A stretch of 63,648 nucleotides of DNA, counting the filler, from Octopus bimaculoides (lineage: Eukaryota): the NCBI RefSeq assembly GCF_001194135.2. It is 6 parts of 6 records of this genome, joined end to end, with 100 filler letters (N's around TTAATTAATTAA, not from the genome) between each part and the next. Parts side by side here need not be neighbours in the genome. Positions count along the whole stretch, not along the records: positions 22,241 to 34,139 come from NC_068996.1; 5 more parts are not named here. One strand, 5' to 3'. The notes under the pieces were generated by a model that searched no databases, was not told the origin of the DNA, and worked only from the letters and a program-made list of their open reading frames with translations. The position numbers and the translations under genes were made by a program. How positions within the stretch are numbered: position 1 is the first letter of the stretch; every line of letters starts with the position of its first letter. Shown one piece after another: positions 31,937-32,423 of the stretch.

Positions 31937-32423
31937 AAAATTATAAATATTCCATTTCTAAATCTCTCAGAAGCGTTATACAGTAGCAGCATGATAAAGT
32001 GATGGTTTGTTGCAAACTTAATGTGGCAGTCCCAGGAAAGGGAAGAATGCTACTGCTATTTAACCCCAGGAAGCACTGTTTCTAGCTGGCCATGTGACAC
32101 AAGCGTTCTGTGCCCTCAAGTTTTCAAACAGGGGAGATAAGCACCTCCATCCAGGAAAGCCAGCATCCAGAGACTAGTTTCAGAGTCATTGCTCTTCATC
32201 AGTCTGGTGTTGCCTGGCCTGCTAGCTGTCGATGCTTACTTGCCTTTGAAAACATGTAGAATTTCAAGAGAAATAAATTCATTGATCTACAAAATTAGAA
32301 ATATTGCATTTCTAAATGTCTTACAGAGACTTATACAGTAGCAGCACGATAAAGTGATGGTTTGTTGCCAACTTAATGTGGCAGTCCCATGAAAGGGAAG
32401 AACGCTACTGCTATTTAGCCCCA
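31937..32423 (-). mobile_element. Hammerhead-bearing 354-bp tandem monomer (about 1.4 units), retrozyme-like copy B
   Basis: 31937-32068 is repeated with divergence at 32291-32423 (period 354). A single hammerhead lies between the repeats; homologous to 11089-11400. Confidence 0.8.
32162..32214 (-). ncRNA. Type I hammerhead ribozyme, apparently intact
   Basis: Minus strand: GGCA-aca-CCAGA-CTGATGA-AGAG-caatga-CTCT-GAA-ACTAGT-C-TCTGG-a-TGCT. Full core, 4-bp stem II, palindromic stem III, stem I with internal loop; predicted cut after the GUC (between 32172 and 32171). Confidence 0.85.

Follow-up and report, generated by a model that had tools for sequence, protein, structure and literature searches.

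A type I hammerhead ribozyme motif in a 354-bp non-coding repeat of Octopus bimaculoides, probably a dispersed copy from a retrozyme-like family

What kind of element carries a self-cleaving ribozyme motif inside a short non-coding repeat, set between simple repeats of an octopus genome? The question is raised by a locus in a window of Octopus bimaculoides DNA (assembly GCF_001194135.2), the window being the whole stretch of 63,648 nucleotides, filler included, in which six parts of the genome are joined end to end. The piece that we analysed, at positions 22241-34139 (from NC_068996.1), is ~12 kb long, has a GC content of 36% and several N gaps, and is made up mainly of microsatellites and of repeats resembling short interspersed nuclear elements (SINEs). 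A sequence-only reading had proposed an apparently intact type I hammerhead ribozyme inside a 354-bp tandem monomer, and had taken the unit for a candidate cephalopod retrozyme. Direct reading of the sequence shows a complete type I hammerhead, with its core fully kept, at 32214-32162 on the minus strand, letter for letter as claimed. As to the element around it, we think it probable that the locus is a dispersed, monomer-type copy of a retrozyme of the kind without long terminal repeats (non-LTR), or of a non-autonomous family derived from Penelope-like elements (PLEs).

The whole motif (32162-32214, minus strand) was recognised by direct reading, by a descriptor and by a covariance model, R1, both of which are described below. 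It opens with GGCA (32214-32211), which belongs to distal helix I, and ACA (32210-32208), in the internal loop of that helix, followed by CCAGA (32207-32203), the 5' side of proximal helix I. The core CUGAUGA, that is, C3-U4-G5-A6-U7-G8-A9 (32202-32196), leads into helix II (32182-32195), in which AGAG (32195-32192) forms 4 bp with CUCU (32185-32182) around the 6-nt loop 2, CAAUGA (32191-32186). GAA (G12-A13-A14; 32181-32179) is followed by the ACUAGU of helix III (32178-32173), a single A15.1-U16.1 pair around the palindromic tetraloop CUAG, and by C17 of the GUC site (32172). The 3' strand of proximal helix I, UCUGG (32171-32167), the 1-nt side of the internal loop, A (32166), and UGCU of distal helix I (32165-32162) complete the motif. 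Hammerhead numbering predicts self-cleavage between C17 (32172) and U1.1 (32171). The core CUGAUGA, GAA, A15.1-U16.1 and C17 all align to R1. Proximal helix I has 5 bp (CCAGA/UCUGG) and is followed by the internal loop and a distal helix, which can be paired as GGCA/UGCU or, alternatively, as GCCAG/CUGGC; loop 1 is ACA/A, or AAC/U in a 6-position register, and loop 2 resembles the CAAAAA of Ax330 and HH9.

The three-helix type I layout, as defined in PMC4209133, is present: helix II has 4 bp, and helix III consists of 1 bp and CUAG. In the canonical type I hammerheads of animals, helix I has 6 bp, helix II 4 bp and helix III 1-2 bp closed by a 2-4-nt palindromic loop; they work as dimers, since two copies extend helix III (PMC4209133). 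The octopus helix III likewise amounts to one pair within one copy and to a 6-bp helix between two copies. Taken together, these features place the motif among the canonical type I hammerheads of metazoans, those that depend on dimers. Moreover, the hammerhead sits at the tip of an imperfect 149-nt hairpin that extends helix I (32113-32261, minus strand), as judged by minimum free energy (MFE) and shuffled sequences. The MFE of this hairpin is -53.5 kcal/mol on the minus strand (z = -3.95, with 0/200 shuffles as stable); on the plus strand the same region folds more weakly (-47.4 kcal/mol, z = -2.17).

How often would such a motif be expected? The descriptor called for CUGANGA, 3 bp or more in helix II, GAAA, a helix III with A...U that was palindromic or had 3 bp or more, H17 and 4 bp or more in helix I. 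It matched the piece once, at the 32162-32214 site on the minus strand. A null of 195 Mb of first-order Markov sequence with the composition of the piece gave 21 loose matches, three of them as good as the octopus site (5 bp or more in helix I and 4 bp or more in helix II) and none of the 21 with a short palindromic helix III; the expectation for an equally good motif under this null is ~3e-4 per piece. Extrapolated to a 2.5-Gb genome, the same null yields tens of loose matches by chance, so that the descriptor alone would not settle a genome-wide scan. An analytic estimate for the compact layout comes to ~5e-11 per base-strand, or ~0.3 per genome, a figure in which the distal helix, hairpin and repeat context are not yet counted.

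R1 was built from hammerheads only, those of coral Amil224, mussel Mg353 and axolotl Ax353 and Ax330, all from retrozyme constructs whose hammerheads were shown to cleave (PMC7229834 supplement). Run on the piece with filters off, it returned 32166-32208 (minus strand) at 28.7 bits, with an E-value of 6.4e-7 by a rough calibration; the alignment spans the full length of the model, and 12 of the 13 modelled pairs are standard. The runner-up in the piece scored 7.5 bits, and there is no second hammerhead; one descriptor match and one R1 match bear out the earlier statement that the locus holds a single ribozyme and cannot release a monomer by itself. Nor did R1 find a hammerhead in 70 kb of O. 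bimaculoides DNA from two loci, where the best score was 11.2 bits. The assignment to a retrozyme-like type of motif thus stands: R1 recognises the site, the layout is that of HHR_Amex1 (see below), and the unit that carries it is short, non-coding and low in GC.

This unit spans 354 bp (31937-32290, minus strand in RNA sense), as delimited by repeat alignment and a scan for open reading frames (ORFs). It has 42% GC and is CpG-poor. A partial second copy of ~134 nt (32291-32424, minus strand), also delimited by repeat alignment, lacks the hammerhead region; read in RNA sense, it is the 3'-terminal part of the unit and is placed 5' of the full unit. The recurrence 354 bp later is as had been noted: 31937-32070 aligns to 32291-32425 with 89% identity (121 matches, 12 mismatches and 3 gap positions). 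The repeat period is 354-355; the 354-bp repeat is real, and 'tandem monomer' overstates a locus of only 1.37 units. The absence of an ORF from the unit was also described correctly: in no frame does an open stretch exceed 66 codons. Neither the 66-codon frame nor ten other concatenated open stretches, from six frames, found a relative in a collection of 5.8 billion proteins. In a control for this protein route, SINE-derived peptides matched only three annotated O. bimaculoides proteins; non-coding DNA of octopus is thus hardly represented in the protein collection, which makes the negative for the unit uninformative.

Retrozymes are 150-450-bp low-GC tandem units, expressed as circular RNAs (circRNAs) (PMC7229834). 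The octopus unit fits this range in length, is non-coding and lies below the ~45-50% GC of such elements; where active retrozyme loci hold two or more ribozymes, it has 1.37 units and one hammerhead. By the definition given in the 2026 preprint 10.64898/2026.07.22.740005, the sequence makes the locus a monomer derivative, not an active retrozyme; in the same work dispersed monomer copies are called 'offspring', and retrozymes are related to the pseudo-LTRs of PLEs (10.64898/2026.07.22.740005).

The flanks of the element consist of simple repeats. At its RNA-sense 3' end it adjoins a (TA)n microsatellite (31796-31936), preceded by an 847-N gap that lies 141 bp left of the element. The right flank (32425-32728), outside the element, comprises a CCCA-rich/(TG)n/G8 end and an inverted SINE-like body: the right end of the partial copy passes into CCCACCCAACCCCA(TG)nG8, the simple-repeat end of the inverted SINE-like element at 32505-32728, which has relatives elsewhere in the piece and in two O. 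bimaculoides loci, L001 and L002. Positions 32443-32514 consist of a 10-N gap (32443-32452) and an exact 62-bp duplicate (32453-32514) of 32381-32442, most likely a scaffolding artefact left by an unmerged contig overlap. We considered a longer array split by the SINE and rejected it, as no unit sequence resumes past the SINE; two inverted repeats, I1 and I2, were likewise discarded as evidence, being artefacts of N runs. Neither end of the element (31937 or 32424) has any relation to the cut site (32172/32171), which speaks against a cleaved linear monomer having been the template. The ends are compatible with a template of circular or multimeric RNA and with a DNA-level event alike.

How does the locus compare with known systems? 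The axolotl/newt satellite 2-type retrozyme (HHR_Amex1, Rtz_331; PMC7229834) has GAA-ACAUGU-C where the octopus motif has GAA-ACUAGU-C, and the two share the single A-U pair of helix III, C17, a helix II of 4 bp and a 6-nt loop beginning with CAA. The axolotl Ax330 and Ax353 also resemble the octopus motif in their 3-nt/1-nt internal loop and in a distal helix I of 4-5 bp, and in both hosts the repeat is non-coding and ~330-350 bp long. HHR_Amex1, with its single-pair helix III and palindromic tetraloop, shows 6% cleavage in monomeric form and efficient cleavage in dimeric form (PMC7229834), and the octopus motif is likewise expected to be dimer-dependent. In contrast, the axolotl ribozyme has G10.1-C11.1 and 6 proximal helix I pairs, where the octopus motif has A10.1-U11.1 and an A•A mismatch; the axolotl has ~60,000 copies, in arrays of up to 180 units, where one 1.37-unit copy is seen in the octopus; and the two units lack sequence similarity outside the ribozyme. 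The retrozyme Mg353 of Mytilus galloprovincialis (PMC7229834) is alike in having a mollusc host, a 353-nt low-GC non-coding unit and a type I hammerhead with a palindromic helix III (ACGCGCGU); expression as a circRNA is a feature of Mg353 itself. It differs in its helix III of 8 nt, in being active as a single motif and in its ~5000 copies, and it has no similarity to the octopus unit. In pDo500 of Dolichopoda cave crickets (PMC2837043), a hammerhead again lies in a tandem non-coding repeat, although the unit is of ~500 bp, the hammerhead is extended or double via stems I and II, and the host is an insect. Compensatory changes occur naturally at G10.1-C11.1 of pDo500, so this pair can vary in animal hammerheads.

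The life cycle that we propose for the family is borrowed from characterised relatives (PMC7229834; 10.64898/2026.07.22.740005; PMC11167929). Transcripts from loci with two or more units would pair the palindromic strands of helix III, forming double hammerheads, which would cut after C17 and so produce ~354-nt monomers. By analogy, the monomers would be circularised by the tRNA ligase RtcB, and the circular or multimeric RNA would be reverse-transcribed in trans by a Penelope-like enzyme with reverse transcriptase (RT) and GIY-YIG domains, at AT-rich or microsatellite targets. Such reverse transcription could give rise to insertions of a non-integer number of units whose ends lie away from the ribozyme cut site. 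PLEs indeed prefer microsatellite or AT-rich targets (PMC8557442; PMC11167929). The locus is consistent with this cycle in its 1.37 units, its ends off the cut site and its (TA)n and (TG)n flanks, as well as in the lack of an ORF, the low GC content and the canonical hammerhead of the dimer type. The locus itself is probably an inert offspring copy, given its one ribozyme, the 1-bp helix III, the A-U at 10.1-11.1, the A•A mismatch and the 11% divergence of the repeats. If transcribed, its RNA would be cut once at best, probably only after pairing with another transcript of the family.

Several observations weigh against this reading, some of them in the motif itself. The G10.1-C11.1 pair, called highly conserved (PMC4209133), is replaced by A32195-U32182, which keeps the pairing and changes its identity; the A-U had already been read correctly. 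Because a change from G-C to A-U takes two substitutions, this variant is more likely to have been inherited from the source copy than to have arisen by random decay. In addition, the sixth position of helix I is an A•A mismatch, leaving 5 proximal pairs instead of 6. With all core nucleotides present and these two departures, 'intact' was slightly generous as a description. The folding calculations are also partly unfavourable. For the 68-nt monomer, the MFE structure (-21.1 kcal/mol) is a non-catalytic alternative fold, compared with -9.8 to -15.6 kcal/mol for the hammerhead fold; the pairs of helix II nevertheless have probabilities of 0.98-1.0 in the monomer ensemble. A double hammerhead in trans reaches -36.4 kcal/mol, versus an MFE of -48.2 for the dimer. 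As modelled, thermodynamics neither proves nor excludes ribozyme activity. The whole 354-nt unit is only marginally more stable than its shuffles on the minus strand (z ~ -1.8, linear or circular), with z = +0.2 on the plus strand. The 11% divergence between the two repeat copies points to either an old insertion or heterogeneity of the template.

The search for relatives adds to these points. A further copy of the 354-bp unit turned up neither in the 12-kb piece nor, by BLAST, in the two O. bimaculoides loci (70 kb), a sample too small to inform. A hammerhead string specific to the family had no exact match in metagenome, viral and prokaryote genome collections, which do not include cephalopod genomes. 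As no other copy was retrieved, we infer family membership from the features of this one locus. The unit showed no similarity beyond the ribozyme to the mussel, coral and axolotl retrozymes. Lack of similarity outside the hammerhead is normal for lineage-specific retrozymes.

The remaining unfavourable point is the outcome of the Rfam search. An Rfam/Infernal hammerhead scan had been named as a check by the sequence-only reading. On the piece, the hammerhead models of Rfam 15 gave no match at their gathering thresholds. In sub-windows of 661 nt and 121 nt searched at E <= 10, Rfam 15 returned no hammerhead family and only chance microRNA and small nucleolar RNA matches. A control puts this result in proportion. 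A looser hammerhead pattern retrieved one unrelated element, L003, with a textbook type I hammerhead that has an ACUAGU helix III and G10.1-C11.1, and to which R1 assigns 34 bits. In Rfam, L003 scored only 10-13 bits (HH9 and RAGATH-1-hammerhead) against thresholds of 52-56. Rfam hammerhead models heavily penalise a one-pair helix III and, since L003 was itself nearly missed, the Rfam negative for the octopus site is weak evidence. L003 lies on positions 1-1445 of the JGI metagenome contig Ga0314680_10104106, with its hammerhead at 628-670 on the plus strand, and holds a ~1021-nt unit in 1.4 tandem copies that are 96-99% identical. Its helix I and ACUAGU helix III are the same as those of the octopus motif, it has no likeness to the octopus unit outside the ribozyme, and it is probably a retrozyme-like element of a eukaryote.

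Could the locus instead be a solo or 5'-truncated pseudo-LTR of an autonomous PLE, present as a partial-tandem insertion? PLE pseudo-LTRs carry hammerheads, and PLEs insert as partial tandems, often 5'-truncated, at microsatellites (PMC8557442; PMC4209133); retrozymes and pseudo-LTRs are, moreover, phylogenetically intermingled (10.64898/2026.07.22.740005). The minimal hammerheads of PLE pseudo-LTRs (PMC4209133) are like the octopus motif in being of type I, with a palindromic or absent helix III, apparently dimer-dependent and located in partial-tandem insertions at simple repeats. However, they have a helix II of 6-8 bp, an extra nucleotide before position 10.1 and a short helix I, and they flank an RT/GIY-YIG ORF. 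The hammerheads of metazoan PLEs are 'minimal', whereas the octopus motif has the canonical architecture that PMC7229834 assigns to retrozymes; its helix II has 4 bp and no RT and GIY-YIG ORF flanks it. An ORF of the size expected for RT/GIY-YIG is absent from the 12-kb piece, and both ends of the octopus element adjoin simple repeats; the gap beyond the (TA)n tract, however, leaves 847 bases unsequenced. We therefore regard a pseudo-LTR as unlikely. A scan for bacterial-type promoters and terminators also found nothing in the piece, and is irrelevant for a eukaryote. An explanation to which we give still less credence is a local duplication of unique sequence at the DNA level, for instance a tandem duplication linked to a microsatellite or the remnant of a small satellite, that was never mobile as RNA and in which the hammerhead is an old relic or a product of chance. 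The presence of only 1.37 copies, the lack of another copy in ~82 kb of octopod DNA and the 11% divergence would all agree with such an origin. The hammerhead score, on the other hand, is far above background, and the idiosyncratic one-pair palindromic helix III and the 6-nt CAA..A loop 2 are shared with validated retrozyme ribozymes. The hammerhead also caps a strand-biased 149-nt hairpin, and the hammerhead 'satellites' of newts and crickets are now regarded as retrozymes (PMC7229834), all of which makes a purely local duplication improbable.

Two further explanations concern the ribozyme itself. That the motif is a hammerhead-like string formed by chance, with no descent from a ribozyme, might be argued from the tens of loose matches expected per 2.5-Gb genome, from the lack of an Rfam match and from the non-canonical 10.1-11.1 pair; set against an R1 E-value of ~6e-7 for the piece, the 0/21 null matches with a compact palindromic helix III and the ~0.3 such layouts expected per genome, it seems very improbable. 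The same holds for a single hammerhead domesticated by the host for the processing of one of its transcripts, as proposed for the intronic HH9 and HH10 of amniotes. The single copy at the locus and the resemblance of loop 2 to the HH9 consensus would suit this role, but no gene is evident in the piece, a lone motif with a 1-bp helix III should be poorly active and the context is one of repeats and microsatellites; domestication is, in our view, a very distant prospect. Thus, a dispersed copy from a retrozyme or PLE-derived family remains the reading that we prefer.

What would such a copy mean? Short tandem repeats with type I hammerheads first became known through the newt satellite of 1987, and were formalised as retrozymes in 2020. 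They are documented from cnidarians to amphibians, molluscs included. In full-text searches of the literature, the sole connection of octopus or cephalopods with hammerheads or retrozymes was a brief mention in a survey of Penelope elements. If the family exists, ribozyme-bearing retrozymes extend to cephalopods and a natural A-U variant of the conserved 10.1-11.1 pair becomes available for biochemistry; the octopus element would add a host lineage and no new mechanism, leaving the picture of how these elements function unchanged. It is possible, though we are doubtful, that octopods harbour a live retrozyme family with A10.1-U11.1 master copies and abundant ~354-nt circular RNAs. With such a family, cephalopods would have their first described ribozyme-bearing circRNA mobile element, and the family would provide a natural test of the importance of the metal-binding position G10.1 in a full-length hammerhead. 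In any event, routine annotation with Rfam will overlook the subclass of retrozymes with a one-pair palindromic helix III.

The piece contains other repeats. A tandem repeat of ~280 bp (28861-29727; 2.9 copies, ~75% matches) is without a hammerhead and belongs to a dispersed family, with relatives at 30358-30442 and at 33863-34095 of the O. bimaculoides locus L001. An exact 206-bp duplication at 29822-30223, around a 10-N gap (30018-30027), is most likely an unmerged contig overlap. Two SINE-like families occur in both orientations, one at 23226-23309, 25743-26136 and 28592-28757, and the other at 23790-23864, 24105-24227, 29875-30283 and 32505-32728. Comparison of the piece with the two O. 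bimaculoides loci (70 kb) gave 83 SINE matches, at 72-88% identity, and the two families as a whole are shared with O. bimaculoides at 70-88%; together with the SINE peptides, this marks the piece as octopod. The SINE peptides match segments of three O. bimaculoides proteins (kelch-like protein 10, actin-related protein 10 and an uncharacterised protein), and these matches suggest that the three gene models include SINE-derived sequence.

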